Assembly: GCA_965649825.1 (NCBI GenBank)
Contig: OZ287708.1
Coordinates: 267,411-331,410 of the forward strand
Reading direction: 5' to 3'
Length of the DNA stretch: 64,000 nt
From: Penicillus capitatus
Lineage: Eukaryota > Plantae > Chlorophyta
A program made the translations under genes and the position numbers. This document shows positions 1 to 23,544 of this stretch, in pieces (within the stretch, counting starts at the first letter, position 1; each line of letters starts with the position of its first letter). The notes beneath the pieces are model-generated. The model was not told where the DNA came from and made no database searches. It was given only the letters and a program-made list of their open reading frames with translations.

Positions 1-46
1 CGGGATATCCGTAGTCCTCTTCTGTGAACATGCGTTCGTCAGCCAT
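1..46 (-). CDS. Exon 1 of a third copy of the module Pro-rich gene (partial)
   Basis: The reverse complement from the ATG at 46 reads MADERMFTEEDYGYP, identical to exon 1 of the R3 copy (22426-22374). Confidence 0.75.
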   Translation of the reverse strand, partial: MADERMFTEEDYGYP

Positions 47-131
47 TGTCTTCTTCTTCGCTTGAGCTCTGGAAAGCAGGAAGGCGGGAGTTCAAACAAC
101 TCGACAGTGCGGAAGGGTCTGCGACGCGACC

Positions 132-137
132 TTTATA
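132..137 (-). promoter_or_regulatory. TATA box (TATAAA) of module gene copy R1
   Basis: CCTATAAAG on the minus strand, ~86 nt upstream of the ATG. The same element is at 10316-10321 and 22512-22517. Confidence 0.6.
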
Positions 138-1859
138 GGCCGCCTCGGTTGCCGAGCGCGACCTGCGGGTGGCGGCTGGGAACCGTGGCCGTTTGGCGGC
201 GCTGCGTGCGCCGCCGGACAGAGAATCGGCCGCCAGACCTCTAGAAGCGCAGAGTACTGTCGTCGGAATGCGCGTCGCGAAAGGGAGAGCACTTCTGGAA
301 GCTTTTCTAAGTGTTTTACAGAAGAGATTCCTTACAGTCTGTGCGCAAGCTCCTCTCAGAGTGTAACGCGCATGCGTTCTCTGCAGTTGTTCCGACGCGA
401 TTCTCCGAACGGCAAACCGCTCGGCTCAGCTCCGCGTTGCCTGGACAGAGGAATGAGGCGGTCTCTCTCGTTCGCAGGATCGGAACGGACTCTGCGTCTG
501 GACGGCCGTCTGTTTCGGGCGTCTCCGCCGCAAACGCCGTCGACAGAGCGTTCTGCGCGGTGTAACGCGAGTCGGTTCGAGGAGTCACCGTTGGTCCTAA
601 CTCCCTCGAACATGGAAGGCAGAACTGAACGACGCCTCTCCGAGGACCAGACGGCCACGGAGTCGTTTTTTCAGTTAATGCTCGTGCACAGCGCCGAGGG
701 AGTGTTTTGGAAGCGCCGTTCGCTCCGATAAACGCAGTCGGGTCGCGTTTTGCATCGGCTGTGCAAGACTGCTGTTCTGTCTGCAATGCCATCGATCAGA
801 CAGCTTCAAGAGCAACTTGTGCGATGGCACTGTAGATCGCGGCAGATGCCAGTCGCGATCCGATGCCATCGCCTACCTTCTCTCCTGCGTATTGCACAGT
901 GCAGAGCGCACCAAAGTGGCGAATTGTCATTGGAAAGGGATAGTTCTGCTGCATCCTCATTGGAATCGTCCACGCCGTTCCGTTCTAGTGTCCTGCGAGT
1001 TCTGATGCTGTGGTGGCTGTGACGGAGAACGTCCGTCTTCTGTTCCGAGACCACTTGTCGAACATCTCTGTAATGAAAGACGAACAACTTCCGCCGAGTG
1101 TTCTGTGCGCGCGGGGCGTTCCTGGACGATGTCGTCAGTGCTGTCCGCGTGCTCTTGGACAGTAAGTGCACTGTGGAATGCATGAACGGCAGAGACTGTA
1201 GTCACGCCTGCTCTCGGCTCTGCCGTTTGGACTGTGACTCGGCATTCCTCGCAGAACACCGAGATGCCTGTCGACGTCGACGCGTTGGATCGAATCCGAT
1301 GGATGCATCCGCATAACAAAGCGTCCTCGAAACAACGGTGCGAGAGAACATACATTACGTGATGCGGCTCTGCAGACGGTAAAACGATTTCAGATGCGAG
1401 AGAGTTTGTTCGGATGCTAAAAGAATGCGACTGTCCACTCCTCGATGTTTCGGCTGGCAAATCGAGACGAGACAGAAGGGATGAATCCAATCGCGGATTC
1501 AGTTCCTACCTTTCACTGCATCTACGCGAGCATCCTGCACAGAGAACTGATGGATCTCGATATCTTTACGAGGCCAAACCTCCTGCGCTGAGAGCACGAC
1601 GATTGACCGGTGAATAGGAAGAGGAGCGAGAGATGCAAAGGCATCTGGAAAGAGCTAACGCCGACCTCGCTGAACGCAGGCCTCACTTCAACGAAAGAAC
1701 AGCGAAAACGAGCGCGTGGCGAGAGAGCATGCTTCGGTCGTTCGAGAACTGAGAAGCAATGTGCGTCTCTGTGGCTCTCGTGTGGAGGGATCGCGAATGA
1801 TGTGGCGTGCGTGCCTGCCTGCTTGCATGATCAGATTCTACGCGAGAAACGCAGAACGC

Positions 1860-3493
1860 GAGAAATGGAGATGCGATTCGTAGCAGTCTTGCAAGAGAGT
1901 CTCGCCAAGCTCGTGGTTTACTCGACCGAACGACGCAAGAGATCGACATCGTTGGCAGCGTGGTGTGACGGACCGTCACCACTGTACCAGGTTTGCATCT
2001 GCCAATGATGACCAGCGTGTGTATACTATGTGCTTGTCTGCCTGCTCTAGCCTACTTCAGTGATTCTCAGAGACAGGCCAGCAAAGATGCCGGACATATT
2101 GCTGGATTGGAAGTCATGCGTATCATCAATGAACCGACGGCAGCTGCATTGGCCTATGGTGTCGATAAGAGAGAGGGATCGGTGGCCGTTTATGATTTGG
2201 GTGGTGGCACCTACGATATCTCCATCCTTGAGATCACAGGTGGCGTCTTCGAAGCGAAAGCCACAAATGGAGATACCTTTCTGGGCGGCGAGGATTTCGA
2301 CAACACCCTGCTGACGTACATCATCGAGGAATTCAAAAAAGATCAGGGGATCGATCTGACAAAGGATCGTTTAGCCGTTCAGAGAATCAGAGTGGCGGCA
2401 GAGAAGGCGAAGATTGAGCTGTCATCGACGACAACGACCGATATCGATCTTCCGTTCACTACAGCAGATGCATCCGGCGCCAAGCACCTGCATCAAACCT
2501 TGACGCGGGCAAAGTACGAATCTCTGGTCAGTCAACTGCTGGACCAAACAAAACAGCCCTGTCAAAACTGCCTCAAAGATGCTGGGGTCTCCCGTGCTGA
2601 TATCAACGACATCGTTCTGGTGGGCGGCATGACGCGTATGCCAAAGGTGCATGAAATTGTCAATGGCATTTTTGGCAAGGACCCATCTCGAGGGGTCAAC
2701 CCGGACGAGGTGGTGGCCATGGGTGCTGCCATCCAAGGTGGTGTGCTGTGAGGTGACCGAGGTGACCTCTTGCTGCTGGATGTCACTCCTCTGTCGATGG
2801 GAATCGAGACATTGGGAGGGGTGATAACCGTGATGATCCCCCGTAACACCACTGTGCCGACCAAGAAGACCCAGACCTTCTCTACTGCCGCTGACATGCA
2901 GACCCAAGTGGGGATCAAGGTCTTCCAAGGCGAAAGACAGATGGTTACCGACAACAAACTTCTCGGAGAGTTTGAGCTCGTCGGCATTCCTCCTGCATCC
3001 AGAGGTGTTCCACAGATTGATGTGACGTTTGACATGGATGCGGACGGTACATGCACGTCTCTGCCAAAGACAAAGCCACCACCAAAGAACAGAAGATCAC
3101 TGTTCAGTCCTCTGGTGTCTCTCCGAAGAGCAGATCCAAGATATGGTGCGCAAGAGTGAGCAGTTTGCAGAGGAAGACAAGAAGAGGAACGAGCTTGTCG
3201 AGGTTAAGAACAATGCCGACTCCCTCTGCTATACAGCCGAAAAGAACCTGGAAGAGCACAAAAGCAAACTTCCTCAGAATATCACCGACGATGTCAATAC
3301 AGCTATGTCAGATCTGAGAGCCGCCAAAGAGAAAGACGACCTCGAAAACATCAAGATGGCCATTCAGAAGCTGAATCAAGCGCTGATGAAGATCGGTGAG
3401 GCGATTTATGGCTTATCCGACAAAGGCAGCAGCGAGGGAGAACCTGCAGCGGGAGGAGATCAAGAAAGGGCTCCAGGACAGAGAAAAGAGTGA
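1860..3493 (+). pseudogene. mtHSP70: Mitochondrial-type Hsp70 (DnaK family) pseudogene, 5'-truncated
   Basis: Motifs [70 protein letters not shown] and LLDVTPLS. In-frame TGA at 2749-2751, frameshifts near 3050 and 3115, and decayed upstream remnants (NGDA ~1865; VTTVP, intron, AYF). Confidence 0.92.
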
Positions 3494-5639
3494 CAAAGGT
3501 GTCCGTCAGTGTCAAAAGTGCGAGATGCAGAAATGCCATGTTTCTATGTTTAACTCTCTCGCTAACTGTGGTTGCTTGGATCGCACCAGCCACGACCTCT
3601 TCTCCACATCGCAAAGTTTGGTCTCGCATCAATTCGCAACTGTCCGTCTGCCGATTCCAGTTGTTCTGCAATGGCGTCGTCCCAGCGAACACAACAGGCG
3701 CGAGGCGCATCACGCGATTCGGGGCAATTGTGCAAGGGGATCCTGTGAAGGCTCATGCTCGACTCGACCGATCGAGAGATCGACCGAACCTTGCAGCGCC
3801 TATCGGAACTGCGCGCACAACCTGAACAGAATATCAAGGGCTGCCACGCTGGGTGGGTATGCACGCGACAGCTGTCTCGTCCATTTAGGTACCTGTGAAT
3901 GCGGTCGGATGCTTTGAATGTTGTGCTGCAAGCAGAACGTGTTTTCGTCGATCTTGGCTGTCAATACGTGGTCGAGTGCTCGGCATGTGAAGCTGAGGCC
4001 ATTCTCACACGCAGGCGACATTCCCGTGGTTGTGCTCTCTGTCATGGACTCGATGGAAATGACGTGATCGTTGCAGAGCCATCAAAGATCACATGCATAT
4101 CGGCGGAGGCCGATGCGTGTCAGGAACGGGGAGCAGCCGTCCAAGCCACGTCGACTGAACGAGGTTACAGACTGCAGACAGAGATCTCTTCTGTGGGATC
4201 TTCTTCTATCGTCAGAGATGAAGAGTGGCATGACAGATAATGGAATCGAATCGATGCTGGATCGCTGGAGAGACTCGAGAAAGTGGCCGAAGCCAATCTC
4301 GGCAAGGTACCCCCACAAAGAAAGTCAGATGCTTTGACAGAAGGGTACGTGTCCTCGATAGCTAAAGCTGAAACCAAGAAGGGATCGAAGAAAGGATTCC
4401 TGTTGCCAAGACAACAACAAAACGCTCAGCCATCTGCAAAACCGAAGGCTGTTCACTGCTCTCTCCCCGTTTCTCTCGAATCAGGGACAGCGTCGGCGAC
4501 GACGACTCGGCATAAGAATGAACAGTCCGTCTGCGTCTCGGATACGGTGCGAGAGAGGGACACCCGAACGGAGGAGAGCACAGAGGACACTGGCACCGAG
4601 AAGGTAGGCATCTCTGAATCGGCCAATGCATAACGATCTGTGAGGTTCACCGCACTGAGTCATCATGCTATCTATCCCCTTTGACTCGATGGCTGAGATG
4701 TGTGCCGGTTTCGCTTATCAGTTTTCATCATGCTTCCCCATGCAGCACCCATTACTGTTCCCTTGATATGCTTTGTTGCCGTCTGTCAGATCGCCGAGAG
4801 TTGCTGACGCCGAGATTCCTGTCTAGACTGAAATTAAGAACTGCATTCGGTTGTCGCGTGCATTGAGTTTCTATTCATCGATATCTGGATGTCCGAGCGA
4901 TCCTTCAGCTGGCACAATCTATGACAGCCATCTCCTGCATGCTCTAAGACTGTAAAGTTGTTCTTGATGTTGTTTATTGTACTTCATCAGGTTGATATAC
5001 CTTGTTCATTCTTAACGCTGTGTTCCTGACTGTTTGTATCGAATCCGACACGCACATATTGAACGTTGACGTCACACACATTAGACCATACACACATTGT
5101 AAACGTCAACAACATTTAAGAAGAAGAATTGAACTCGATCACAGTGGTGGTGTAATACTCTCTCATTCGCGAGCACACGTCGTTATCTCTGTAGGACAAG
5201 ATAGGTTGGCGGCGCCGCCATGCTGCATTCTATTCTGCGGAGGCAATCTCCATCTGAGATAAAGGCGCTGGGGGCTGAAGTTTTTTAAAAATCGTCTAGC
5301 GCATTCGACACAGGGAAGATTACGTGCGTTCTCTGACAGCAGTTCATTTCTCCGCTATATCACTCTTTCTAAAACTAAGAACTCTGATGTCACACTTCAT
5401 TGAATAAAGCAAAAAAAAGGTAGAAAGATAATAGAGAGCTTTGACAGCAGGTCTTCCTCAAGACATGTTTGCTGAACGAATCTCTACAACTGAAAACAAT
5501 GTTTTCATATTGTCTCTGTCTCTGCAGACTGTGACATTGTTTAGAAAAGAGATTGTGTAAAGAATAGCTAACCTGTAGATCACTTCCTTAAAGTGAGAGG
5601 ATGTTGATCTGCGAGGCAGACTCAGATTTGGCCGCTTGC

Positions 5640-8600
5640 GCCAGCTTCAATCCAGAACTGCCTCCACCGACAGCCAGAGCAGAAGGATGGCCTCCAGTGA
5701 CGGCCAGAGCGGTCAATAGTGTGCCCTGGCTGCCTCCACTGGCGGCCAGAGCGTCAATAGCGTGCCCATGGCCGCCTCCAATGGCGTCCAGAGCGGTAGG
5801 TAGGGGGTGCCCTGGCTGCCTCCACTGGCAGCCAGAGCGTTGGGCTGGACGCCTGTGACCGCCTCTCTCTCTCCGGCGGCTGCCAGACGTCAGGTGGACG
5901 CCTCCATATGTCCCCGTGTGATATGGCGGCGGCCAGACGTCAGGTGGACGCCTGTGACCGCCTCTCTCTCCGGCGGCGGCCAGAGCGGTAGGTAGGGTGC
6001 CCTGGCTGCCTCCACTGGCAGCCAGAGCGTTGGGCTGGACGCCTGTGACCGCCTCTCTCTCTCCGGCGGCTGCCAGACGTCAGGTGGACGCCTCCATATG
6101 TCCCCGTGTGATATGGCGGCGGCCAGACGTCAGGTGGACGCCTGTGACCGCCTCTCTCTCCGGCGGCGGCCAGAGCGGTAGGTAGGGTGCCCTGGCTGCC
6201 TCCACTGGCAGCCAGAGCGTTGGGCTGGACGCCTGTGACCGCCTCTCTCTCTCTCTCTCCGGCGGCTGCCAGACGTCAGGTGGACGCCTCCATATGTCCC
6301 CGTGTGATATGGCGGCGGCCAGACGTCAGGTTGAACGCCTGTATTTGTCTTCGGCGGCTGCCAGACGTCATGTGGACGCCTGTGACCGCCTCTCTCTCCG
6401 GCGGCGGCCAGAGCGGTAGGTGGGGTGCCCTGGCTGCCTCCACTGGCAGCCAGAGCGTTGGGCTGGACGCCTGTGACCGCCTCTCTCTCTCCGGCGGCTG
6501 CCAGACGTCAGGTGGACGCCTCCATATGTCCCCGTGTGATATGGCGGCGGCCAGACGTCAGGTTGAACGCCTGTATTTGTCTTCGGCGGCTGCCAGACGT
6601 CATGTGGACGCCTGTGACCGCCTCTCTCTCCGGCGGCGGCCAGAGCGGTAGGTGGGGTGCCCTGGCTGCCTCCACTGGCGGCCAGAGCGTAAGGGTCGAC
6701 CTCCAGCGACGGCCAGATGTCTAGTCAGCCAAAATATCCGCCTCCACTGGCGTGCAGAGCAGGTAGGTAGAGTGCTCTGGCTGCCTCCACTGACAGCCGG
6801 AGCGTGAGGGTCGGTTTCCAGAGACGGCCAGATGAGTGTCGGCCGCCATTGCCGCCTCCACTCGCGGCCAGAGCGGTAGGCAGGGTGCCTAGGCCGCCTC
6901 CACTGGCGGCCAGAGAGGTGGGCCGGCCGCCCATTGCTGCCTTCAATAGCAGCCAAAGTCTGGCTGGCCTCCAGTGACGGCCAGAGATTAGGTCGTCCGC
7001 CATGGCTGCCTCCAATGGCAGCCAAAACGGTGGGCCGGCCGCCCATTGCTGCCTTCAATAGCAGCCAAAGTCTGGCTGGCCTCCAGTGACGGCCAGAGAT
7101 TAGGTCGTCCGCCATGGCTGCCTCCAATGGCAGCCAAAACGGTGGGTTGGCCTCCATCGGCGGCGAGACGTCAGGTGGACGCCTCTTTGTGTCTCCAGTG
7201 GCTGTGAGACGTCAGGTGGGCGCCTGTGACCGCCTCCATCGGCGGCCAGGCGTCAGGTGGGTGCCTGTATTTATCCCTATCGGCGGCGGCGAGACCTCAG
7301 ATTGGACGCCTGAGACCGCCTCCATCGGCGGCCAGACGTCGGGTGGACGCCTGAGACCGCCTCCATCGGCGGCCAGACGTCGGGTGGACGCCTGAGACCG
7401 CCTCCATCGGCGGCCAGACGTCGGGTGGACGCTTGAGACCGCCTTTCTTTTCGGCGGCGGCGAGACCTCAGATTGGACGCTTGAGACCGCCTTTCTTTCC
7501 GGCGGCGGCGAGACCTCAGATTGAACGCCTGTCTCTGTCTCCGGCAGCGGCCAGACAATGGGTGGGCCCAGACGACGGTCTCCAGCAGCAGCAAGAGCGG
7601 CAAAAAGATCGTCCGTGACGGACTCCAACAGCCGCCAGATATCAGGTAGGGCGCAGACGGCGGTCTTAAATGACAGCAGGGCAGCTAACAGATTATCCCT
7701 GAGGGCCAATGACAGCAGCGCAGATAACAGATCATCCATGGAGGTCTCCAGCATCCATTGACATTAGGGCACCTAACGGATCATCCATGAGGAACTCCAG
7801 CATCCAATAACAGCAAGAACGGCAAGTAGATCATGTGTAACGGCCTCCAGTACCCGCCTTACGTCAAGTGGACAATCGACGAATGTTTCCAATCGCAGCA
7901 GAGCAAATAACAGATCAACCCAGACTACCTTCTACCTCCAATAATGGCATATAGATCACCATGAGGCCGTCCATCCTCCAACCACAAAAGGTAGTACACA
8001 GCCTACTCCAGCCTCCGACAGCAGCAGTACAGCAGGTAGATCATCAGAGTCGGCCTCCAGCCTCCGACAGCAGCAGTACAGCAGGTAGATCATCAGAGTC
8101 GGCCTCCAGCCTCCGACAGCAGCAGTACAGCAGGTAGATCATGTGAGACATCGTCCAGCATCCAATGGCAGCAAGTAGAACATATGTGTCGGCCTCAGGG
8201 CCTCCATCAGCAGCCAGTCAGCAAATAGATCGTCAGGGATGGTTCCAGACAGCCTCCAGTCACTGCAACCGTCAAACTGATCATCCGGGGTGCCTCCAGC
8301 CTTCAATCACAGCAAGAAGAACATCCATGACAGCCTCCGTTCGCAGTAATATAGTATTAAGACATCTGAGACAGTTTCCAGCCTCCAATGGCAGCAATAC
8401 AGCAGGTAGATCATGCGAGACAGCCTCCAGCCGCCTTAGCAGCAAAACATCAGGTAGGACACTCCAGCCTCCAATGGCAGCAATACTGCAAGAACATCAT
8501 CTATGTCGGCCTCCAGCCTCCGAGAGCAGCAATACAGCAGGTAGAACATCCGAGTTGGCCTCCAGCTTCCAGTCACAACAGAGCCGCGAGTAGATCATGC

Positions 8601-8850
8601 GAGACGGCCTTCTATTTCCAATCGCGGCAAGACAGAATGTAGATCATCCATGACAGCTCCATCTTCCAATCGCAGCAGAGCAGCTAACAGATCTTCCCAG
8701 ACTGCCTTCTATCTCCAATAACGGCATATAGATGATCATGAGGGCGTCTAGCCTCCAATCACAGAAGGTAGTACACAGCCTACTCCAGCCTCCAAATCGC
8801 AGCAAGACATCAGGTAGGACAACCCAGCCTCCAAGCAAAAAAACAGCAAA
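5640..8850. repeat. Compound GC-rich minisatellite region of R2
   Basis: Units of 190/190/238/232 bp (starts 5807, 5997, 6187, 6425), a ~113-bp duplication (~6920-7140), ~39-bp units (~7300-7460) and 43-bp units x~3 (~8010-8140). The GCCTCCA core recurs throughout. Confidence 0.93.
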
Positions 8851-9022
8851 TCAGCTTCCGACAGCCTTCGTGCAAAAAAAACAGCCAACACAGAGCCAAC
8901 CACAACAAAGCGAAGGTGGAATGGCAGAGAAGCAGCAGAAAAAAAGAAAACAACCCCTTCATTATTGTTTTTTATTTTTTGTTTTTTTTCATCTACCCCC
9001 AAGGAAAACAGCTTGGAAAAAA

Positions 9023-10219
9023 TTAACTAGATCTGGCCCCCCATACAGGCCAATTCTGGATAGAAATCTACACAGCAAACAAACCATAAGAGAGACTAAA
9101 GAATAGTTGAACTTACACATTGTCCCGACATAAAGAAGAGACGTTCTGGGATGACTGGCTGGCAGATCTGAATGCACTGGCCAGAAAGGAAATAGGGCCT
9201 GGGAGGAATACCTAGGGGGCCGACCGAAAAGATGAATGGACGGGGTGGGATGACAGATGGGCAGGTGAGAGAATACAAAGACGTGCGTTCTGGAAAGGCA
9301 GGTGGCCGAGAATGGAGGGAGAGGAAAAAGGGACGTGAAGGAATTGAAGGAGGGGGGGATGCAGGAATGCAGTATACTTGTGGCCGGGCAGGAAATAGAG
9401 AGGACTGGGCAGGTTGGGAGGCTGAAGGCGCGGCTGGCGGAGCTAGGGAACACTCCATGTGGTGAGACTGGGCAGGCTGCGAGTCTGGCGGAGGAGGGGC
9501 TGGTTGAGATGCTGGCGGCACTGCCGTCTGGGCAGGAGACCACTCCATATGGAACGGATGGAAGAATGGCTCCGAGGGTGGCGGCTGGAGAGGCGGCGTG
9601 GCCGGCTGAGTAGGCGGCGGCGCGGAGCTCTGGGAGGCGGCATGCTGCGAAGCCATCGGCGGCATGCCATGCTGCTCGGAGGGAGATTGCTGCTGGGGAG
9701 GCGGCGATGCGGTCCGGGCGGGCGGAGGGGCTGCAGGCCGGCCCTCTTGGGCCAGCCGCGCTCTCCTCCCCTCCGAGGAGAGGACCCTAGCGCGCCGTAC
9801 CGGCCGAGGCTGTGGGGTTTGGACCCTATTGGGTCCAAACCTCACAGGAGGGGTCTGCGCCGCGAGGTGCTGCTGACCCCTCTGAGCAGTTGTCTGGGCT
9901 TTCAAATCCCAGTACAACTGCTCACGCTCGGCCGGACTCATGCCCTGGAAGGCCCTAGGCGGTCGGTCGCCTAGGACCTCCGGCAAAGTCACTTGGGAGA
10001 ATCTACATAACACACAAGGGTCAGAGGTGTCTCGAAGAGCAGACGCGCCGCGCGCTACGGGGCTCCTCGACTGCAGCCGGACGCATGCGTGCGATGAAAA
10101 GCGTTCTGGCCGCAGTCGAGGAGCCCCGTAGCGCTCGGCGCGTCGAAACATGGCCAGTGGACTCACGGTTTGCCTGGATATCCGTAATCGTCTTCGGTAG
10201 CCATGTGAGCATCAGCCAT
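9023..10219 (-). CDS. Module Pro-rich protein, 3 exons (10219-10167, 10002-9117, 9067-9023), ~327 aa
   Basis: GTGAGT donor, CTGAC branch-like site and TAG acceptor for intron 1; GTAAGT...TAG 49-nt intron 2. Splice phases match the R3 copy and the frame stays open. N-terminal domain FSQVTLPEVLG...LYWDLK...TPPVRFGPNRVQTPQPRP is conserved. Confidence 0.8.
10042..10144 (-). ncRNA. Long intronic hairpin (structured element in intron 1)
   Basis: Perfect 23-bp inverted repeat (10052-10074 / 10112-10134), extendable to 10042/10144. It covaries with the R3 copy. Confidence 0.7.
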
Positions 10220-10315
10220 CGTGGTCGTTGAGGTCGCAGAAAACAACAGCAAGAACTCAGAAAACAGAGCGCAAGAACTCGGAAACTCGAGTGCGGAAGG
10301 CTCTGAGACAAGACC

Positions 10316-10321
10316 TTTATA
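10316..10321 (-). promoter_or_regulatory. TATA box of module gene copy R2
   Basis: CCTATAAAG ~97 nt upstream of the ATG at 10219, conserved in all three copies. Confidence 0.6.
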
Positions 10322-12354
10322 GGCCGCCTCGGTTGCCGGGCGCGGCCTGCGGGTGGTGGGTGGGAACTGTGGCCGTTTGGCGGCGCTGCATGCGCCGCCG
10401 GACAGAGAATCGGCCGCCAGACCTCTAGAAGCGCAGAGTACTGTCGTCGGAATGCGCGTCGCGAAAGGGAGAGCACTTCTGGAAGCTTTTCTAAGTGTTT
10501 TACAGAAGAGATTCCTTACAGTCTGTGCGCAAGCTCCTCTCAGAGTGTAACGCGCATGCGTTCTCTGCAGTTGTTCCGACGCGATTCTCCGAACGGCAAA
10601 CCGCTCGGCTCAGCTCCGCGTTGCCTGGACAGAGGAATGAGGCGGTCTCTCTCGTTCGCAGGATCGGAACGGACTGTGCGTCTGGACGGCCGTCTGTTTC
10701 GGGCGTTTCCGCCGCAAACGCCGCGAGAGAGCGTTCTGCGCGGTGTAACGCGAATCGGTTCGAGGAGTTGGCGTGCGTCCTAACTCCCTCGAACAAGGAA
10801 GGCGGAACCGACGACGCCTTCTGCGAGGACCAGACGGCCACGGAGTCGTTTTTTCAGTTAATGCTCGTGCACAGCGCCGAGGGAGTGTTTTGGAAACGCC
10901 GTTCGCTCCGATAAACGCAGTCGGGTCGCGTTTTGCGTCGGCTGTGCAAGACTGCTGTTCTGTCTCCAATGCCATCGATCAGACAGCTTCAAGAGCAACT
11001 TGTGCGATGGCACTGTAGATCGCGGCAGATGCCAGTCGCGATCCGATGCCATCGCCTACTTTCCGGGCATGTTCTCTATTCTGCAGAGTTCACTAGAACG
11101 GTGGATCACGACTGGAAAGGGATGGTATGCTGCTGCGTCCTCGTCGGAATCGTCCATGCCGTTCCGTTCTAGTCTGGCGAGTTCTGATTTTATGAGGGCT
11201 GTGACGGAGAACGTCCGTCTTCTGTTCGGAGACCACTTGTCGAAGATCTCTGTAATGAAAGACGAATAACTGCCGCCGAGTGTTCTGCGCGCGCGGGGCG
11301 TTCTAGGACGATGTCGTTGGCGCCGGCGATGTTCTCTCGTGCGGCAAATGCTCTGTGGTACGCTTGAACGACAGACTCTGCAGTCATTCCTGCTCTTAGC
11401 CCTGCCGTTCGGACCAGCGACTCGGCATTACTCACCGAGCGCCGAGATGCGTGTCACCGTCGACGCGTTGGATCGAATCCGATGAATGCATTCGCCTAGC
11501 AAAGCGTCCTCAAAACAACGGTGCTAGAGAACGCACATTGAGTGTTGCGCTCTGTAGACGGTCCAACGATTTCGGATGAGAGAGAGTTTGCTCGCGACGA
11601 ATGGGCGCGCCGACGGAGTGCGACTGTTCGCTCCTCGATTTTTCGGCTGACAAATCGGGGCGAGCTAGAAGGGGATGATGCCTGTCCTGGATTCAGTCCC
11701 TACCTTCCGACGCAGCTGCGCGAGCACGATGCTCTGGGAGCTGACGGACGTGGATTCGACGCGCGAATGCGCGTCAAGTACTCTGCCTTGCCACTGCCGT
11801 GCGTCGTTGTGGACTGTGGCAGCTGCCCGCCGTCTGTTTCATCGTCCTCCTCACTGCTGTCAGTGATCTCTCAACGCATCCATCCGCGCAGCGCGCTGTA
11901 CGCCTGAGCATCTTGCGCTTTGCGTCTGTGCCTTTCAATTAAATCCGCGTCGTGCTTGCGTGCTTTCTTCATCTGTGCTTGATCTTCGGAAAGCAGTAGC
12001 CCAGTGCAAGCATCTTAATCTATCACTGTACTACGGACGGTCGGCGAGGAAAGACGACATCGCCGTTCGCCAAACAACAAGTTGTCTTCTCCTCGACACG
12101 ACGACGGCAACAGACGCCTGAGCTGCATCGCATTCCACGGTTAGGACAGCTCGCTCTCAGACGTGACCAGGTGCCGTTTTATTCAGCAACCGATATATCA
12201 CTGGGCGGAGCACGAGGGAAAGAGCGAACTCTGAACGCGCGACGCGCGTCGGCAGCCGCCGCCACAGTCGTGCTCTTGTCAGGAGATGCATGCTCATCTT
12301 GCCGTAGAGCATTTTGAAGATTCGTCAAGCGTTGCATTACGGTCGCCGCCGAGA

Positions 12355-12987: not shown

Positions 12988-13084
12988 GGCAGTTCCACTG
13001 AACAATGGACACTGTATCTGTCTGTCGGTTGTTTAACGAGGGCGCGGCTGTAAGGAAACAGATGTCCTGGATGTCCCTTTGATA

Positions 13085-14096: not shown

Positions 14097-15652
14097 GATA
14101 TCATCCATACGCACGATACTCTGGAGCTATCCACCAGTCTCGCTGCAGTGCTGGAATTGGAGGATGACCAAGCCATTCCAGAGATTGCGTCATTTGAAGC
14201 AACTCGGCTTTTCTTACTATGTCTACTCCGGTGCCTCGCATAATCGATTTGAGCACTGCTTGGGTGTTGGACATCTTGCTGGAAAATGGGCCAGATCACT
14301 CATGCAGTGTCGTCGATTACCTCACGAGGAAATGGATCGCTGTGCCACTCTTGTCGAAATTGCCGGTCTGTGTCACGATCTGGGACATGGACCTTTCTCG
14401 CATGCTTGGGAACAGTCCATTCTCCCGAGCCTTGGCGTTCGCAACTGGTCTGCATTCGTTTTTCCTTATGCTTTGTCCACCGGATGGTTGTCAGGTGCCA
14501 CGAGAAAATGAGTTCGACGCTGGTGGAGTACATCTTTGACCGACACGACATTGAAGATCGTTTCGATCTGAATCGCCACGATATGGACACGATACTGAAT
14601 CTCATCGCAGGAGAGAAGCCCACACATGCGGAATACTACAGCGGACTGCCCGTTTATCTGTTTGATATTGTGAATAACCGTTGCAGTGGCATCGATGTGG
14701 ATAAGATGGACTACCTGCAAAGGGATGCGCTTCACAGCCACGTCACTGTTTCTGCACCTTACGGCCGATTCCTCGACTATGCAAAGGTAGCTGCTTGACA
14801 GGCCCTTCATCAGGGACCGATGCAGCCGTGGTCCGATCGTAGACGGATGATCGAAGTATCCTCTTCCGGATGCGTGAGCTCGGCAATTTTGTTGAGATGT
14901 TCAAAGATCGAATGAAAATGCATCGCGTCGTTTACAAGCACAAGTCCGATCTTTTGTGGCGATGATGTAGTCTATGACATCATTGCTTTTAGGATAACTG
15001 TTGCCATTGGATTGATGGTGGCCGATGCTTTGCATCATGTGGGACATGAACCGCAGCTGCCGGCTCGAAGTCACAATCCCGATGCGTTTCTCAAACTCAA
15101 AGATTCGCTGCTGGAATACGTCTACGAACACTATCGGTCGAACTCGCCCGGAGCTCAAAGAGCAAAGGAGCTGTGCAGAAGGATTGAGTCGAGACGACTG
15201 TACACACTCTGTGGAGAAATGGCCATTCCCGAGAACCACATTTCTTGGTTCCTGACAAACAAAGTGACTGCCAGTGATATCACCACTCGACAGAAAACCG
15301 ATGGCCAGGTGAGACCCTGATAGACGACAGAGATGTCTGCCATGCCCAACAGGTCGATCTGAGGCCAGAAGACATTCACATATCCTACAACTATGCAGAC
15401 TGTGGAATGAAGGACAAGAATCCGATTCGCAGAGTCAAGTGCTATCAAGAGCGTTTCGAGGAGATCGGCATCATGGCAGAAGAAATCGAACCCATTCAAC
15501 GACTATCCATCCGAGTCTACTGCAAGAACAGGGAACATGAGGGCGCTGTGAGAGCTGCTTTCGGATCATTCGAGAAATCATTTGCGCCCGAGCTGTCCAC
15601 TCCTGACCGCAATGAGAGGAGGTCCTTGGACGCGCAGTACTTGTCTGAATGA
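14097..15652 (+). CDS. SAMHD1: SAMHD1-like HD-domain dNTP triphosphohydrolase (apparent +1 frameshift near the 5' end)
   Basis: Motifs FQRLRHLKQLG, SHNRFEHCLGV, GLCHDLGHGPFSH, NNRCSGIDVDKMDYLQRD, MHRVVYKHK and GMKDKNP, joined by GT-AG introns. An extra G at ~14166 separates ...ED from TKPFQRL. Confidence 0.88.
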
Positions 15653-17744
15653 AATTGGCGGCGCTTCGCTGACGTGCATGCAAGTAGACGTCGTGACAGT
15701 CATGACCAATTTCGTTTTCCATTCGTTTTCTTTTCTGCTGCTTGTCGTCCGCGACCAGCAGCGTGCATTGATTCTTGACTCTTGTGATGGAGGGCTGGGT
15801 CAAAAACATATCACTGGACCTATTATGAAGTGGGGATGTGTCAAGGGAAAATGATATAGTGTTCCACGAAATCAAGCCAGGTGGACGCATATGTTCTCTG
15901 AACCCCTTGACGGACTGCAGCGTTAAATATGCGTCCATCTTTCGCTTCTCTTTCACAAGTGTTCGTGTCGGGTCTCGATTTCATTTCATAGAGTCCGCGA
16001 GATCACGGGAATTTGCATATTCTTCGATCCTTGGCTGATGCAGTTAGGCACTCCTTCGCTGAATGGGATACTGGTTGAGGATTCGGGACCTTTTGGCTTT
16101 GGGATTCGTGAATTGTAAAAGCGAATGCCTAAGAAATGTGGATCTCTCGAGTCAGAAGCGCGCCAAAAACCACACCGCCCAGAGCTATGTTCTCTGTCCT
16201 GCCGACCGCTGAGCTCTCTCAATGCTGTCAGCAGTGACGACAACAAATACGACATCGATCCATTGACATTTCAATCTCGAAGCAACGCATACGGGATGCA
16301 CGATCTTGCAAAAAGAGACAGGCGCGATCCGACTGAGGAAAAACCATTCCCCGTTATCTATTGTGCCTACTGCTCTCGGATCGTTCAAGGTGGAAAGCTG
16401 CATATACCTTGTGTCGTGAAGAGGGATCATTGGAAAGGGCAATCGCGTCTGTCGTTTGTTTTGCCGTCGGAGATATTCTTGAAAGAGCCTTTTCGTTGTA
16501 CGTGTCGACATTTTTAAACAAATGACGGCGAGAAATTGAGCGGATCATTCGCCACGATGCATAACGATCTGTGATGCTCACCGCACTGAGTCATCATGCC
16601 ATCTATCCCCTCTGACTCCATAACTGAGACGTGTGCCGGTTTTGTTTACCAGTTTTCATCTTGCTTCCCCTATTACTGTTCCCTTGATATGCTTTGTTGC
16701 CGTCTGTCAGATCGCCGAGAGTTGCTGACGCCGAGATTCGTATCTAGACTGAAATCAAGAACTGCATTCGGTTGTCGCGTGCATCGAGTTCCTATTCGTC
16801 GATGTCTGGATGTCCGAGCGATCCTTCAGCTGGCACAATCTATGACAGCCATCTCCTGCATGCTCTAAGACTGCGAAGTTGCTCTTGATGTTGTGAACTG
16901 TACTTCATCAGGTTGATATACCTTGTTCATTCTTAACGCTGTGTTCCTGATTGTTTGCATAGAATCCGACACGCACATATTGAACGTTGACGTCACGACC
17001 ATTACACCAAACACATATTGCAAACGTCGACAACACTTCAATCAGAACTGAACTCGATCACAGTGGTAGTGTAATGCTCTCTCATTCGCGAGCACACGTC
17101 GTCATCTCTGTAGGACAAGATAGGTAGGCGCCGCCGCCATGCTGCATTCTATTCTGCGGAGGCAATCTCCATCTGAGATAAACGCGCTGGCAGCTGAAGT
17201 TTTTTAAAAATCGTCTAGCGCATTCGACACAGGGAAGATTACGTGCGTTCTCTGACAGCAGTTAATTTCTCCGCTATATCACTCTTTCTAAAACTAAGAA
17301 CTCTGATGTCACACTTAATTGTATGCAACAAAACAAGAAAGGTAGAAAGAAGACAGAGAGCTTTGACAGCAGGTCTTCCTCCAAACATGTTTGCTGGACG
17401 TATCTCTACATCTGAAAACGGCGTTTTCGTCTTGCCTCTATCTCTGTAGATGGAACATTGTTTAGAGAGGAGATTGTGTAAAGAATAGCTAACCTGTAGA
17501 TAGCTTCCTTCGAGTGAGAGGTGTTGATCTGCGAGGCAGACTCAGATTTGGAAGCTTGCGCCAGCTTCAATCCAGAACTGCCTCCACTGGCGGCCAGAGC
17601 ATCAGGTAAGGTGCCCTGGCCGCCTCCACTGGCAGCCAGAGCGTTGGACTGGACGCCTGTGACCGCCTCTCTCTCCGGCGGCTATCAGACGTCAGGTTGG
17701 ACGCCTGTCTTTTTCTTCGGCGGCGGCGGCCAGAGCGGTAAGTA

Positions 17745-18990
17745 GGGTGCCCTGGCTGCCTCCACTGGCAGCCAGAGTGGTAGGTTGGCCTCCAGCGGCG
17801 GCCAGAGCGGTAGGTTGGCCTCCAGCGGCGGCCAGATGTCAGTCGGCCGCCCATTGCCGCCTCCATTGGCGGCCAGAGCAGGTAGGTAGAGTGCTCTGGC
17901 TGCCTCCACTGGCAGCCAGAGCGGTAGGTTGGCCTCCAGCGGCGGCCAGATGTCAGTCGGCCGCCCATTGCCGCCTCCACTGGCGGCCAGAGCAGGTAGG
18001 TAGAGTGCTCTGGCTGCCTCCACTGGCAGCCAGAGTGGTAGGTTGGCCTCCAGCGGCGGCCAGATGTCAGTCGGCCGCCCATTGCCGCCTCCACTGGCGG
18101 CCAGAGCAGGTAGGTAGAGTGCTCTGGCTGCCTCCACTGGCAGCCAGAGTGGTAGGTTGGCCTCCAGCGGCGGCCAGATGTCAGTCGGCCGCCCATTGCC
18201 GCCTCCACTGGCGGCCAGAGCAGGTAGGTAGAGTGCTCTGGCTGCCTCCACTGGCAGCCAGAGTGGTAGGTTGGCCTCCAGCGGCGGCCAGATGTCAGTC
18301 GGCCGCCATTGCCGCCTCCATTGGCGGCCAGAGCAGGTAGGTAGAGTGCTCTGGCTGCCTCCACTGGCAGCCAGAGCGGTAGGTTGGCCTCCAGCGGCGG
18401 CCAGATGTCAGTCGGCCGCCCATTGCCGCCTCCACTGGCGGCCAGAGCAGGTAGGTAGAGTGCTCTGGCTGCCTCCACTGGCAGCCAGAGCAGTAGGTTG
18501 GCCTCCAGCGGCGGCCAGATGTCAGTGGGCCGCCCATTGCCGCCTCCACTAGCGGCCAGATGTCAGTCGGCCGCCCATTGCCGCCTCCACTGGCGGCCAG
18601 AGCAGGTAGGTAGAGTGCTCTGGCTGCCTCCACTGGCAGCCAGAGCGGTAGGTTGGCCTCCAGCGGCGGCCAGATGTCAGTCGGCCGCCCATTGCCGCCT
18701 CCACTGGCGGCCAGAGCAGGTAGGTAGAGTGCTCTGGCTGCCTCCACTGGCAGCCAGAGTGGTAGGTTGGCCTCCAGCGGCGGCCAGATGTCAGTCGGCC
18801 GCCATTGCCGCCTCCAGCGGCGGCCAGATGTCAGTCGGCCGCCCATTGCCGCCTCCACTGGCGGCCAGAGCAGGTAGGTAGAGTGCTCTGGCTGCCTCCA
18901 CTGGCAGCCAGAGCGGTAGGTTCGCCTCCAGCGGCGGCCAGATGTCAGTCGGCCGCCATTGCCGCCTCCACTGGCGGCCAGAGTTCAGGT
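17745..18990. repeat. 114-bp minisatellite x~10 (30+41+43-bp subunits)
   Basis: AGAGCAGGTAGG recurs at 17875, 17989, 18103, 18217, 18330, 18444, 18599, 18713 and 18867. Two units carry an extra ~41-bp subunit. Confidence 0.95.
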
Positions 18991-19168
18991 AAGACGTCCA
19001 TGACGACGCGCCAGCAGCCACTAGACATTAGGTAGGGTACGCATGACGGGCTCTAATGACAGCTTGAGCAGTGGGTATGACGTCCACGAAGTCTCTAGTT
19101 ACGGCCAGTATCAGATAGGTCGCCCACGATGGCTTCTCTTGGCATCCAGTCGTGGAAAGGAGATCGCT

Positions 19169-20202
19169 GACGGCCTCCACTAGCCGCCAGCAGGCAGACG
19201 GATCGTCAGGGGCATCCAATACAGCAGCCAGTCACAGCGAGACGCAGGGATAGGTAATCCAGGACGGCCTCCACTAGCCGCCAGCAGGCAAACGGATCGT
19301 CAGGGGCATCCAATACAGCAGCCAGTCACAGCGACACGCAGGGATAGGTAATCCAGGACGGCCTCCACTAGCCGCCAGCAGGCAAACGGTTCGTCAGGGG
19401 CATCCAATACAGCAGCCAGTCACAGCGAGACGCAGGGATAGGTAATCCAGGACGGCCTCCACTAGCCGCCAGCAGGCAGACGGTTCGTCAGGGGCATCCA
19501 ATACAGCAGCCAGTCACAGCGAGACGCAGGGATAGGTAATCCAGGACGGCCTCCACTAGCCGCCAGCAGGCAAACGGTTCGTCAGGGGCATCCAATACAG
19601 CAGCCAGTCACAGCGACACGCAGGGATAGGTAATCCAGGACGGCCTCCACTAGCCGCCAGCAGGCAAACGGATCGTCAGGGGCATCCAATACAGCAGCCA
19701 GTCACAGCGACACGCAGGGATAGGTAATCCAGGACGGCCTCCACTAGCCGCCAGCAGGCAGACGGTTCGTCAGGGGCATCCAATACAGCAGCCAGTCACA
19801 GCGAGACGCAGGGATAGGTAATCCAGGACGGCCTCCACTAGCCGCCAGCAGGCAGACGGTTCGTCAGGGGCATCCAATACAGCAGCCAGTCACAGCGAGA
19901 CGCAGGGATAGGTAATCCAGGACGGCCTCCACTAGCCGCCAGCAGGCAAACGGTTCGTCAGGGGCATCCAATACAGCAGCCAGTCACAGCGAGACGCAGG
20001 GATAGGTAATCCAGGACGGCCTCCACTAGCCGCCAGCAGGCAAACGGTTCGTCAGGGGCATCCAATACAGCAGCCAGTCACAGCGACACGCAGGGATAGG
20101 TAATCCAGGACGGCCTCCACTAGCCGCCAGCAGGCAAACGGTTCGTCAGGGGCATCCAATACAGCAGCCAGTCACAGCGAGACGCAGGGATAGGTAATCC
20201 AT
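19169..20202. repeat. 94-bp minisatellite x11
   Basis: GACGGCCTCCACTAGCCGCC recurs every 94 bp from 19169 to 20109. Confidence 0.97.
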
Positions 20203-20203
20203 C

Positions 20204-20570
20204 ACGGCCTCCAGGCCTCCAACAGCAGCAAGACATGAGGTAGGTAATCCTGTACGGCCTCCAGGCCTCCAACAGCAGCAAGACATCAGGTTGGTAATCC
20301 ATCACGGCCTCCAGGCCTCCAACAGCAGCAAGACATGAGGTAGGTAATCCTGTACGGCCTCCAGGCCTCCAACAGCAGCAAGACATCAGGTTGGTAATCC
20401 ATCACGGCCTCCAGGCCTCCAACAGCAGCAAGACATCAGGTTGGTAATCCATCACGGCCTCCAGGCCTCCAACAGCAGCAAGACATCAGGTTGGTAATCC
20501 ATCACGGCCTCCAGGCCTCCAACAGCAGCAAGACATCAGGTTGGTAATCCTCGACGGCCTCCAGGCCTCC
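20204..20570. repeat. 50-bp minisatellite x~7.5 (two variants)
   Basis: ACGGCCTCCAGGCCTCC recurs at 20204, 20254 ... 20554. Confidence 0.95.
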
Positions 20571-20890
20571 AGCCTCCAATGAGATAGACAAACAGTATAG
20601 GCCGCCTCCAGCCTCCACTGAGATAGACATAAAGTATAGGACGCCTCCAGCCTCCACTGAGATAGACATAAAGTATAGGCCGCCTCCAGCCTCCACTGAG
20701 ATAGACATAAAGTATAGGCCGCCTCCAGCCTCCACTGAGATAGACATAAAGTATAGGCCGCCTCCAGCCTCCACTGAGATAGACATAAAGTATAGGCCGC
20801 CTCCAGCCTCCACTGAGATAGACATAAAGTATTGCAGCCTCCAGCCTCCACTGAGATTGACAGTCGGTATAGGTGCAGCCTCCAGCCTCC
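20565..20890. repeat. 39-bp minisatellite x~8
   Basis: GCCTCCAGCCTCCACTGAGATAGACATAAAGTATAGGCC in tandem. Confidence 0.95.
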
Positions 20891-21126
20891 AAGTAAAAAA
20901 CAGCTAACACAAGGCCAACCACAACAAAGCGGAGGTGGAATGGCAGTGAGACACGACAAGAAAGAAAACAGCCCCTATTAATCTTTTTTTATTATTATTT
21001 TTTCTCACACTTAAAAAGGTGTGAGATTATTGACAGAAAAAAAAATTTTTGTTCCTTTATCAATTTTTGTTACCCTTGAGAAAACAGCTTGCACAAAAAA
21101 CTCCAGTGATCGGCCCCCGATTCAAG

Positions 21127-22426
21127 CTAATTCTCAATAGAAACCTGCAGAACAAACAGAGCATGAGAGAGACTAAAGAAGTGAGCGGGTTGCTTACACA
21201 CTGTCCCGACATGAAGAACAGTCGTTGCGGGATGACTGGGGGGCAGATGGTGATGCACTGGCCGGACATGAAAAACGGACGGGGAGGGAATCCAGGTCGT
21301 CTGACCGGAAAAATAGAGTTGCGGGGAGGGATAGGAGGTGGCTGGTTGAGACAAAAACGCGATGTCCGCTGAGGGAAGGGAGATGGACGAGCCGGGAGGG
21401 AGAAAAAACATGGGCGAGAAGGAATTATAGGGGCAGGAGAGGCAGGAATGCAAAACACAGCCGGCCGTGGAGGAAACAAAGGAGTTCGGCCATGCTGCAC
21501 AGAGGACGGGGAGAAGTCGGGCTGCGGACAGGGAACCGGGGCCCACTCCATGTGAGGAGACTCGACAGGGTGGCATGCGGGCTGCTGGGATGGCGGCTGG
21601 AAAGCAGGCGATGAGGCAGGCAACCACTCCATGTGTGCCTGTTGGCCGGTCTGGGATGCCGGCGGCTGGGTTGGCTGTTGGGTCGGCGGTGGAGGTGCGG
21701 CCGTCTGGGCCTGAGAAGGCGGTGCGGCCGTCTGGGAGGCCGTCGGAGGTGCGGCCGTCTGGGAGGCCGTCGGAGGTGCGGCCGTCTGGGAGGCCGCAGG
21801 AGGTGCTCCAGGCCGGGGGACGGGCGGCTGGGCTGGCGACTGGCGGCTCGGAGGCGGCGCGGCAGGCTCGGAGGCCGGCTGCGAGACAGGCGGCGGCGCA
21901 TAGGTCGGGACTCGCTGGGGCGGCGGAGGTGCAGCAGGCTGGCCCTCTTGGGCCAGCCGCGCATTCCTCTCCTCGGTGGAGAGGATCCTTGCCCGCCGCC
22001 CGGGCCGCGGCTGTGGGGTTTGGACCCTATTGGGTCCAAACCGCACAGGAGGGGTCTGCGCATCGAGGTGCGCTTGACCCCTCTGGGCAGTTGTTCGGGA
22101 TTTTAAATCCCAATACAACTCCCGGCGCGCGGCCTCGTCCAATCTCACGAAGGCCCTGGGCGGGTGGCTTCCCAGGACCTCCCTCAACGTGACTTGGGCG
22201 AAACTGGGAACACACAATGGTTAGAGATCAGTCGAAGAAGAGTTCGTCGAAACGTCACGCGCTGCAGAGCTTCTCGACTGCAGCCGGACGCATGCGTGTT
22301 CATGGAGAGTGTCCAGCCGCAGTCGAAAGGCTCTGCAGCGCGCGACGTTTCGACGAATGGCCAGTGGACTCACGGTCTGTCGGGATATCCGTAGTCCTCT
22401 TCTGTGAACATGCGTTCGTCAGCCAT
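21127..22426 (-). CDS. Module Pro-rich protein, 3 exons (22426-22374, 22203-21198, 21144-21127), ~358 aa
   Basis: GTGAGT donor, CTAAC branch site and CAG acceptor; GTAAGC...CAG 53-nt intron 2. Same phases as R2. Contains internal 9-aa TAAPPxASQ repeats. Confidence 0.8.
22243..22357 (-). ncRNA. Long intronic hairpin (R3 copy)
   Basis: ~47-position stem (22243-22289 / 22311-22357) with few non-Watson-Crick positions. Confidence 0.7.
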
Positions 22427-22511
22427 TGTCTTCTTCTTCGCTTGAGCTCTGGAAAGCAGGAAGGCGGGAGTTCAAACAACTCGACAGTGCGTAAGGGTCT
22501 GCGACGCGACC

Positions 22512-22517
22512 TTTATA
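22512..22517 (-). promoter_or_regulatory. TATA box of module gene copy R3
   Basis: CCTATAAAG ~86 nt upstream of the ATG at 22426. Confidence 0.6.
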
Positions 22518-23544
22518 GGCCGCCTCGGTTGCCGAGCGCGGCCTGCGGGTGGCGGCTGGGAACCGTGACCGTTTGGCGGCGCTGCATGCGCCGCCGGACA
22601 GAGAATCGGCCGCCAGACCTCTAGAAGCGCAGAGTACTGTCGTCGGGATGCGCGACGCGAAAGGGAGAGCGCTTCTGGCTGCTTAACGAAGTGTTTTACA
22701 GGAGAAATTTCTTACAGTTTGTCGGCATGTTCTGCCCTTAGTGTAACGCGCATGCGTTCTCTGCGGCTGTTCCGACGCGGATCTCCGAACGGCAAACCGC
22801 TCGGGTCAGCTCCGCGTTGCCTGGGCAGAGGAATGAGGCGGGCGTTCTCTTTCGCAGGAGCGGCACGGACTCTGCGTCTGGACGGCCGTCTGTTTCGGGC
22901 GTCTCCGCCGCAAACGCCGTCGACAGAGCGTTCTGCGCGGTGTAACGCGAGTCGGTTCGAGGAGTCACCGTTGGTCCTAACTCCCTCGAACATGGAAGGT
23001 AGAACTGAACGACGCCTCTCCGAGGACCAGACGGCCACGGAGTCGTTTTTTTCAGTTAATGCTCGTGCACAGCGCCGAGGGAGTGTTTTGGAAGCGCCGT
23101 TCGCTCCGATCAACGCAGTCGGTCGCGTTGTGCAGCTGCTGTGCAAGACTGCTGTTCTGTCTGCGAATCCGTAGATCGGACAGTTTCGAGGACAACCTGC
23201 GTGGTGGCGCTGTCGATCGCGGTAGAGGCCAGTCGCCATCCAATGTCATCGCCATCTTTATTTCCGGCGTATTCCACAGTGCAGAGCGCACCAAAGTGGT
23301 GAATTGCCATTGGAAAGGGATAGTTCTGCTGCATCCTCATTGGAATTGTCCATACCGTTCCGTTTCAGTGTCTGGTGAGTTCTAATGTTATGAGGGCTAT
23401 GATAGAGAGCGTCTGTTTTCTGTTCGGGGACCACTTGTCGAAAATCTCTGTAATGAAAGACGAATAACTACCGCCGAGTGTTCTATGCGCCATCTCTTCA
23501 CACAATGTCCCTTGTGACTGTGCCGTGATTTCTTTGACGCACAG

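Follow-up and report, generated by a model that had tools for sequence, protein, structure and literature searches.

A 7-kb gene-carrying module in a green alga is probably the core of a segmental duplication system

The present study concerns a stretch of 64,000 nucleotides of DNA from Penicillus capitatus (contig OZ287708.1, positions 267,411 to 331,410), called the window throughout, in which one partial (R1) and two full (R2 and R3) direct copies of a composite unit of ~7 kb were found by self-BLAST of the window and a repeat finder. The unit, referred to here as the module, carries a spliced gene for a proline-rich (Pro-rich) protein together with minisatellite and other non-coding DNA. 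Our data indicate that the module is probably a core-duplicon-like segmental duplication system around a lineage-specific nuclear gene locus, and not a transposon. A first-pass annotation, made from the sequence alone, had described three direct ~7-kb copies with a colinear layout and had taken them for an amplifying element that rearranges host sequence. The copies and their layout were borne out. The interpretation was right in outcome, and segmental duplication together with recombination is the best-supported mechanism for it.

Results

Copies of the module in related genomes

The window was compared with related loci, which are designated L001, L002 and so on. At least 12 copies of the gene are present in one metagenome and at least five called proteins lie on one contig of 572 kb, so that the lineage-specific gene family is spread largely along one chromosome and the earlier statement that the unit amplifies is upheld. 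Positions 1-5840 and 8379-18991 of the window are ~96% identical to 125-146 kb of this 572-kb contig (L006), which was assembled independently and agrees with the window in its layout and in its broken Hsp70. An assembly artefact, a possibility raised by the first-pass annotation itself, is therefore excluded. The part of R1 that the window does not reach is seen in this counterpart as an R3-like gene with a long hairpin intron. A second array is present at 541-572 kb of the same contig and extends to the contig end.

The host-gene pieces that lie between the modules are duplicates. In a distant genome (L008) the Hsp70 locus is intact and module-free. In a closer genome (L009) the same upstream synteny is kept over 11.7 kb and Hsp70 is again intact; homology ends 236 nt past the stop codon, and at that point the module starts, tail-to-tail with Hsp70. 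Window positions 1975-5111 are a partial copy (86-95%) of this L009 arrangement, which is ~400 kb away on the same contig. In the relative, the intact gene on the same contig shares 95% identity with the Hsp70 pseudogene of the window, and the match to L009 over 1975-3894 amounts to 1.9 kb at 95%. A processed retrocopy was also considered as the source of this pseudogene and was rejected, as the copy starts in an intron and keeps intron sequence. A complete COG4 gene stands next to a module in the other array, and the two COG4 pieces of the window correspond to neighbouring segments of it. Between window 9716-17601 and L007, a locus 70 kb away, collinearity is kept over half of the R2 gene, the upstream block and the SAMHD1-like gene, and it reaches into the distal block of R3; over 12112-17601 this is a match of 5.5 kb at 95.5% to a paralogous copy ~70 kb off in the relative. 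Since the collinearity runs across module borders, the duplicated unit is something other than the module. This match and that of 1.9 kb to L009 satisfy the usual definition of a segmental duplication (at least 1 kb at 90% or more), as do matches of 1.0-1.1 kb at 90-91% inside the window.

The flanks of the core are a mosaic, in which pieces or copies of Hsp70, COG4, SAMHD1-like, bromodomain, NSUN2 and Tmemb_14 genes occur in varying combinations. At their 5' side the modules end raggedly, and four or more distinct breakpoints were counted there. The upstream block of R2 is nearest to that of R1 (divergence K 0.04), and its coding region is nearest to L007 (synonymous divergence, dS, 0.015; upstream K to L007 0.17); parts of one copy having different nearest relatives indicates gene conversion or recombination among copies. 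There is an old single-copy home locus, the synteny of which is kept between two diverged genomes; L003, from a closer genome, and L004, from a distant one, share downstream flank synteny. The home-type copies L003, L011 and L012 have no distal block at all. On comparison of gene order among closely related genomes the modules sit where synteny breaks, the order being COG4-module-Tmemb_14 in L011, COG4-module-bromodomain in L001 and NSUN2-module-Tmemb_14 in L003.

The claim that host sequence is rearranged holds good, as the modules stand at rearrangement or synteny breakpoints beside truncated host genes. The host genes of the window had been called broken. This is correct for Hsp70, with its stop and frameshifts, and for the two separated pieces of COG4, but not for the SAMHD1-like gene, which seems intact in its catalytic core. 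The sequences between the copies are unique within the window but not genome-wide. It was also seen that in metagenome ERZ25074695 L002, L011 and L012 are on 7x-9x contigs and L001, L003, L006, L007 and L009 on 36x-41x contigs. Several closely related algal strains or species, at different abundances, seem to be present in this metagenome. Their module neighbourhoods differ, which provides a natural comparison set for recent rearrangements.

The Pro-rich gene and its protein family

The module carries its own protein-coding gene, as had been proposed. Exon 1 is 53 nt long and ends in phase 2; it is followed by intron 1 (GT[AG]AG...YAG, 164-170 nt) and by the large Pro-rich exon 2, after which there is probably a second, small intron and then a short terminal exon. 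Splice sites, intron position and intron phase are identical in every copy examined. Codon-periodic substitutions among copies are confined to exon 2, and pairwise ratios of nonsynonymous to synonymous divergence (dN/dS) lie at 0.19-0.47 over the N-terminal ~88 codons and at 0.10-0.41 over the C-terminal repeats, which shows purifying selection on the gene. Positive selection, which is typical of primate core duplicons but not required for them, was not detected in these pairwise values (0.10-0.47).

The protein consists of a conserved N-terminal domain, a variable middle rich in Pro, Ser and Gln, and C-terminal IPxRPxF repeats with SGQC motifs. No Pfam domain was found in the protein, and structure prediction gave a mostly disordered chain (predicted local distance difference test score, pLDDT, 56). 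Family searches spanned 1.8-5.8 billion proteins; 28 members were found by profile word search and 26 by exhaustive HMMER over 1.84 billion representatives, and all found members are metagenome proteins from a few metagenome assemblies. No relatives of the protein were found in IMG/VR, which would have pointed to a viral origin, or in the JGI metagenomes. The protein is an orphan family restricted to a poorly sampled algal lineage.

Several further observations were made on the gene. In R3 exon 2 (window 21691-21806) there is a 27-nt in-frame tandem repeat of 4.3 copies that encodes repeated (A)PPTASQTA units; it is missing in R2, so the middle region of the coding sequence itself changes by repeat expansion. 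Some copies, namely L009 19484-18183 (the L001b copy) and L004 10001-10720, have a frameshift within the C-terminal repeats, so that they are likely to be pseudogenes, and in L004 the shifted frame is now itself a 33/66-nt tandem repeat. A small conserved hairpin is present in the A-rich stretch immediately 3' of the gene (window 21000-21030, L004 11261-11445, L005 11287-11463), with the arms CTCACAC...GTGTGAG in R3 and GTCACACT...AGTGTGAC in the distant copies, and is a possible mark of the transcript's 3' end. The motif TGTTTGTT near the 3' end of the gene prompted a consideration of Blastocystis affinity, which was dropped as the motif is not enriched (3 matches, 1.85 expected).

The upstream block

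Conserved non-coding homology upstream of the gene extends over ~0.7-1.4 kb per unit, and every copy, those of the distant genome among them, has ~670 nt conserved 5' of the TATA box. Between R2 and R3 the upstream block has K 0.10 as against dS 0.40-1.08, and against distant copies K is 0.32-0.40 as against dS of 0.7 to more than 2. The upstream block thus evolves several times slower than synonymous sites. Hidden coding was rejected for this block, which has no codon periodicity, and also for the distal block, which has stops in all frames and equal similarity in each frame. Structured RNA did not explain the upstream block either: an RNAz-style scan flagged only the window of a GC palindrome, the pairs of which are invariant and show no covariation. 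Since the block is non-coding and its only structure-like signal is this invariant palindrome, it is read as a constrained promoter or DNA-binding region. It should be noted that the motif CTGGCGGCC occurs in the conserved promoter block (window 10324-11000 and equivalents, alignment A3 columns ~640-720) and also inside many satellite units of related copies, for example as GTCTGGCGGCCAGTGGAGGCCGTC in L001 and L002. This sharing hints that one DNA-binding factor could recognise both module ends.

The hairpin in intron 1

The structured intron of the first-pass annotation was strongly confirmed, with a minimum free energy (MFE) of -98 kcal/mol and z-scores of -11 and -9 in the window copies. 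A near-perfect hairpin of ~50 bp is found in intron 1 of R2, R3, the R1 counterpart and L007 (MFE about -95 to -98 kcal/mol, z -8.5 to -11). When the stems of R2 and R3 are compared, 32 pairs are identical, 2 are changed on one side and 11 are changed on both sides with pairing kept; exchanging the arms between R2 and R3 costs 24-30 kcal/mol. A core stem of 13-16 bp is kept in all copies including the distant ones, and the long extension is limited to one sub-lineage. From the two-sided changes, the cost of arm exchange and the retention of the core stem it follows that complementarity is actively maintained, either by selection on the RNA or by arm-to-arm conversion. No known RNA family (Rfam) or tRNA was found in the window at gathering score, and a permissive Rfam search gave only sub-threshold matches of microRNA (miRNA) shape on the intron hairpin (47 as against 83 bits). 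The intron does offer what an miRNA precursor has, a long near-perfect hairpin in a presumably transcribed region. The 21-mers derived from the stem have no target outside the family's own introns within the sequence examined.

The minisatellite tract

TGGAGGC occurs 131 times in the window as against 9.6 expected, and 119 of these occurrences fall within the two satellite zones, without exception on the minus strand. The arrays have units of 39, 41, 49, 50, 94 and 114 nt or compounds of these, so that both unit length and sequence vary from copy to copy and also inside single copies; common to all arrays is TGGAGGC as the core, on the gene strand. This is likewise true of the isolated copy L003 and, in reduced form, of the distant genome (L004 and L005). 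The satellite tract is 2.5 kb long in the window as against 1.6 kb in the 96% counterpart L006. The tract therefore has the marks of a shared-core minisatellite, namely units of ~10-250 nt, a short core and length variation between relatives. The arrays had been described as stem-loop arrays, which is true of the GC-rich 41- and 114-nt arrays (z -2.3 to -4.1) but not of the 94-, 50-, 49- and 39-nt arrays (z ~0). A 45-nt tandem repeat of 2 copies with a GGCCTCCA core was also noticed at window 45829-45916, far from any module.

The vertebrate "core" minisatellites are hypervariable and GC-rich and share one short core. The algal tract resembles such minisatellites in that different unit lengths and sequences share a short G-rich core on one strand and in that tract length varies among close relatives. 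It differs in being a fixed 3' component of every member of the gene family, its position being kept across diverged genomes.

Organization of the module in the window

An AT-rich block, ~3 kb of minisatellites, a spliced Pro-rich gene, a TATA box and an upstream block had been claimed for each full copy, and all are present. On the minus strand the order of the unit is upstream block, TATA motif, 5' untranslated region (UTR), gene, satellite tract and AT-rich distal block. In direct orientation R1 matches R2 (1-1532 with 10284-11726, 88%) and R3 (1-1110 with 22381-23490, 91%), and R2 matches R3 in its distal part (4626-5681 with 16557-17601, 90.6%) and its gene-proximal part (9716-11286 with 21918-23484, 82%). 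Spacing from copy to copy is ~10.2 and 12.2 kb in the window. R2 had been delimited as 4626-11760; its start stands, but homology stops at ~11726. The TATA motif CCTATAAAGGTC is found 82-93 nt 5' of the ATG in R1, R2 and R3, and the variable 5' UTR is ~80-90 nt, the ATG being at 46, 10219 and 22426, respectively. R1 is represented in the window by the promoter and only the first 46 nt of the coding sequence (CDS). The GC fraction of the distal block is 0.44-0.46 as against 0.51 window-wide. An imperfect 8-bp hairpin, GATGACTCA...TGAGCATC, is located ~17 nt inside the distal end. The features are collected in Table 1.

Table 1. Positions of module parts and of neighbouring gene pieces in the window
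Position	Strand	Feature	Remarks
1..46	-	R1 CDS start, first 46 nt	ATG at 46; remainder beyond left window edge; from R1/R2/R3 alignment
128..139	-	R1 TATA motif	CCTATAAAGGTC
140..1532	-	R1 conserved non-coding upstream block	Homology reaches 1532 (R2), 1110 (R3), 1978 (L001a)
1975..3717	+	Truncated mitochondrial-type Hsp70 (HSP70C) pseudogene	Starts inside Hsp70 intron; one in-frame stop, two frameshifts
3760..4635	+	Fragment matching COG4 3' end/downstream region	87% to L001 5112-4235
4626..5657	-	R2 distal AT-rich non-coding block	GC 0.44; outer edge ~4626 is the sharp recurrent module end
5658..8833	-	R2 minisatellite zone, 3.2 kb	40 TGGAGGC cores, all gene-strand; periods 41-232 nt
8834..9116	-	R2 3' region	Putative small intron 2 and short exon 3, A/T-rich stretch, ~100-nt piece kept in all copies
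9117..10002	-	R2 exon 2	Pro-rich protein, 295 codons
10003..10166	-	R2 intron 1	~50-bp near-perfect hairpin; MFE -98.3 kcal/mol, z -9.1
10167..10219	-	R2 exon 1	17 full codons and 2 nt, phase 2
10312..10323	-	R2 TATA motif	
10324..11726	-	R2 conserved non-coding upstream block	
14164..15652	+	SAMHD1-like HD-domain dNTPase gene	In R2-R3 spacer; seems intact over catalytic core
16557..17579	-	R3 distal AT-rich non-coding block	GC 0.46; sharp end ~16557
17580..20891	-	R3 minisatellite zone, 3.3 kb	79 TGGAGGC cores; arrays of 114, 94, 50, 39 nt
20892..21197	-	R3 3' region	Conserved ~100-nt piece, A-rich stretch with small hairpin, putative intron 2 and exon 3
21198..22203	-	R3 exon 2	335 codons
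22204..22373	-	R3 intron 1	~50-bp near-perfect hairpin; MFE -98 kcal/mol, z -11
22374..22426	-	R3 exon 1	
22508..22519	-	R3 TATA motif	
22520..23490	-	R3 upstream block	Ended at 23490 by junction with COG4 fragment
23489..24407	+	COG4 internal fragment	89% to L001 6189-5269; N-terminal ~1.8 kb of gene missing

Host and remainder of the window

The host is a green alga, probably a relative of the siphonous ulvophytes, because the intact mitochondrial-type Hsp70 of a related locus comes nearest to that of Ostreobium quekettii (80%) and of Bryopsis (78%), followed by other chlorophyte HSP70C. The window is otherwise gene-rich and contains the intact housekeeping genes LIAS, TELO2, Vps26 and transaldolase. 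An inverted partial duplication (94%, 85-96%) was also observed, in which 33685-36331 corresponds to 56688-54035 and 37529-38723 to 52560-51978. This region holds an NCBP1/CBP80-like MIF4G gene, and in the inverted copy (52652-53898) the middle of that gene is replaced by a 166/333-nt tandem array of 7.5 copies, 97-99% identical, which forms an open reading frame of 431 aa.

Discussion

The module is probably one expression unit, in which a constrained promoter block of ~700 nt with a GC palindrome and TATA box drives a three-exon gene. Intron 1 carries a maintained hairpin, and 3' of the gene come the strand-specific TGGAGGC tract and then the AT-rich terminal block. In one lineage segmental duplication, both tandem and interspersed, has probably taken place again and again around this locus as its core, and each event brought along variable lengths of flanking DNA. 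The copies then probably recombined and converted one another ectopically, which would have left truncated Hsp70 and COG4 copies between modules and put modules at synteny breakpoints. Minisatellite or hairpin DNA may promote breakage or template switching and in this way drive the duplications; for the protein, the hairpin and the TGGAGGC core, too, the roles are ones that we infer.

Some points weigh against this reading. Seven copies share a distal end defined to within ~10 nt, which reads ...GATGACTCAGTGCGGTGAGCATCACAGATCGTTATGCAT and stands against at least three unrelated flanks, and random duplication breakpoints do not predict a sharp recurrent end of this kind. The relatives were read as pieces of ~20 kb, ~230 kb of related loci in all, and the junction catalogue covers these pieces only. 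Metagenome ERZ25074695 contains several related strains together (contigs of 41x, 36x, 9x and 7x), which blurs some comparisons of orthology and paralogy.

An ordinary expansion of a tandem gene family was considered as a rival. By this explanation the family would have grown by unequal crossing-over under selection for the dose of Pro-rich protein, the module would have no special part in destabilising the DNA, and the distal end would be a founder boundary modified by later indels. The direct orientation of the copies with their ~10-12 kb spacing, the purifying selection on the gene, and the nested class B flank, of which 33 nt are common to four copies before they diverge, are as such an expansion would leave them. 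However, copies are also interspersed 70-400 kb apart and are found on other contigs, three flank classes occur at the same end, synteny between closely related genomes breaks where modules lie, and some copies (L009/L001b and L004) are frameshifted. It is considered doubtful that tandem expansion is the explanation.

It is improbable that the module is a mobile element of a non-autonomous kind, Helitron-like or otherwise replicative, which has a defined 3' terminus, moves together with its passenger gene and captures or transduces host flank at its variable end. The sharp distal end with an 8-bp hairpin ~17 nt inside it would suit such an element, and so would the host-gene fragments adjoining the copies, the occurrence of copies on several contigs and in direct arrays, and the module that is present beside Hsp70 in the closer genome and absent there in the distant one. 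In a transposon both termini are expected to recur, but here the distal end recurs in seven copies and the 5' end, with its four or more breakpoints, does not. The terminal signatures of transposons are also missing apart from the small hairpin: inspection of the module ends by eye showed no terminal inverted repeat (TIR) or target-site duplication (TSD), a dedicated search for inverted repeats not having been run, and the distal end does not have the CTRR terminus that belongs to the 5'-TC...CTRR-3' pair of a Helitron. No transposase, reverse transcriptase or Rep was seen in the module, in agreement with the first-pass annotation, and no transposase or Rep-helicase in the window or the ~230 kb of related loci. 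Moreover, duplicated segments span the module borders, similarity among copies is mosaic and conversion-like, home-type copies do without the distal block, and gene and promoter are under purifying selection of the kind seen in host genes. The ragged 5' ends, the duplications that cross borders, the mosaic relationships and the syntenic home locus speak against the earlier view of a transposon-like mobile element. That annotation had also named local copies with ragged ends as a sign of plain tandem duplication; the ends are indeed partly ragged, but copies exist well beyond the local array.

It is equally hard to credit, and perhaps slightly harder, that the module is an undescribed self-amplifying, gene-carrying element with one defined terminus, in which hairpin DNA would trigger template switching or rolling-circle-like copying and transduce host genes. 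The intronic hairpin and the TGGAGGC arrays may in that case be small-RNA or protein-binding components of the element's own control. A pericentromeric or subtelomeric repeat, or an artefact, is very improbable, for although one array (541-572 kb) runs to the contig end and the region is satellite-rich, the array of the window lies ~125-146 kb into a 572-kb contig amid LIAS, TELO2, Vps26 and transaldolase, and an independent assembly yielded this structure at 96% identity.

The closest described parallel to the core-duplicon-like system favoured here is that of the primate core duplicons, for example LCR16a with the NPIP gene family (PMC7419210, PMC6920530). In both there is a core with a lineage-specific gene family that is duplicated repeatedly and mostly along one chromosome, with a mosaic of duplicated host flanks, rearrangement breakpoints and expansion from an ancestral single locus. 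They differ in that the algal core is 7 kb as compared to ~20 kb and is under purifying (dN/dS 0.1-0.47) and not positive selection. The algal core also contains an intron with a hairpin and 3 kb of strand-specific minisatellites, and no Alu-like boundary repeats are known for it. Helitrons and other gene-capturing rolling-circle transposons are similar in having one sharp end with a small internal hairpin and a variable other end, no recognised TIRs, host gene fragments beside the copies and direct arrays. In contrast to them, the algal module is without a CTRR-3' terminus or an A/T target (between A and T), and no Rep-helicase partner was seen in the loci read; its duplications span its borders, its gene and promoter are host-like, and its syntenic home locus is ancient. 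Long near-perfect hairpin precursors of small RNAs, some of them intronic, occur in green algae and plants (PMC5511227, PMC3661559). The intron 1 hairpin is like these in its near-perfect intronic stem of ~50 bp, its compensatory maintenance and its weak resemblance to miRNA-precursor covariance models. It is unlike them in its Rfam score (47 as against 83 bits), in having no target in the sequence examined and in the restriction of the long stem to one sub-lineage.

Interspersed segmental duplication of the core-duplicon style has so far been described mainly in primates, and the module would be a compact 7-kb case of it in a green alga. With a clear ancestral locus, identifiable donor and acceptor sites and close genomes in the same samples, it would be a tractable system for finding out what makes a segment prone to duplication. 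It has three features that can be tested experimentally, namely a slowly evolving non-coding promoter block, a hairpin of ~50 bp with 11 paired changes, and a minisatellite conserved in its core but not in its unit. In addition, it documents an orphan family of disordered proteins from a poorly sampled algal lineage.

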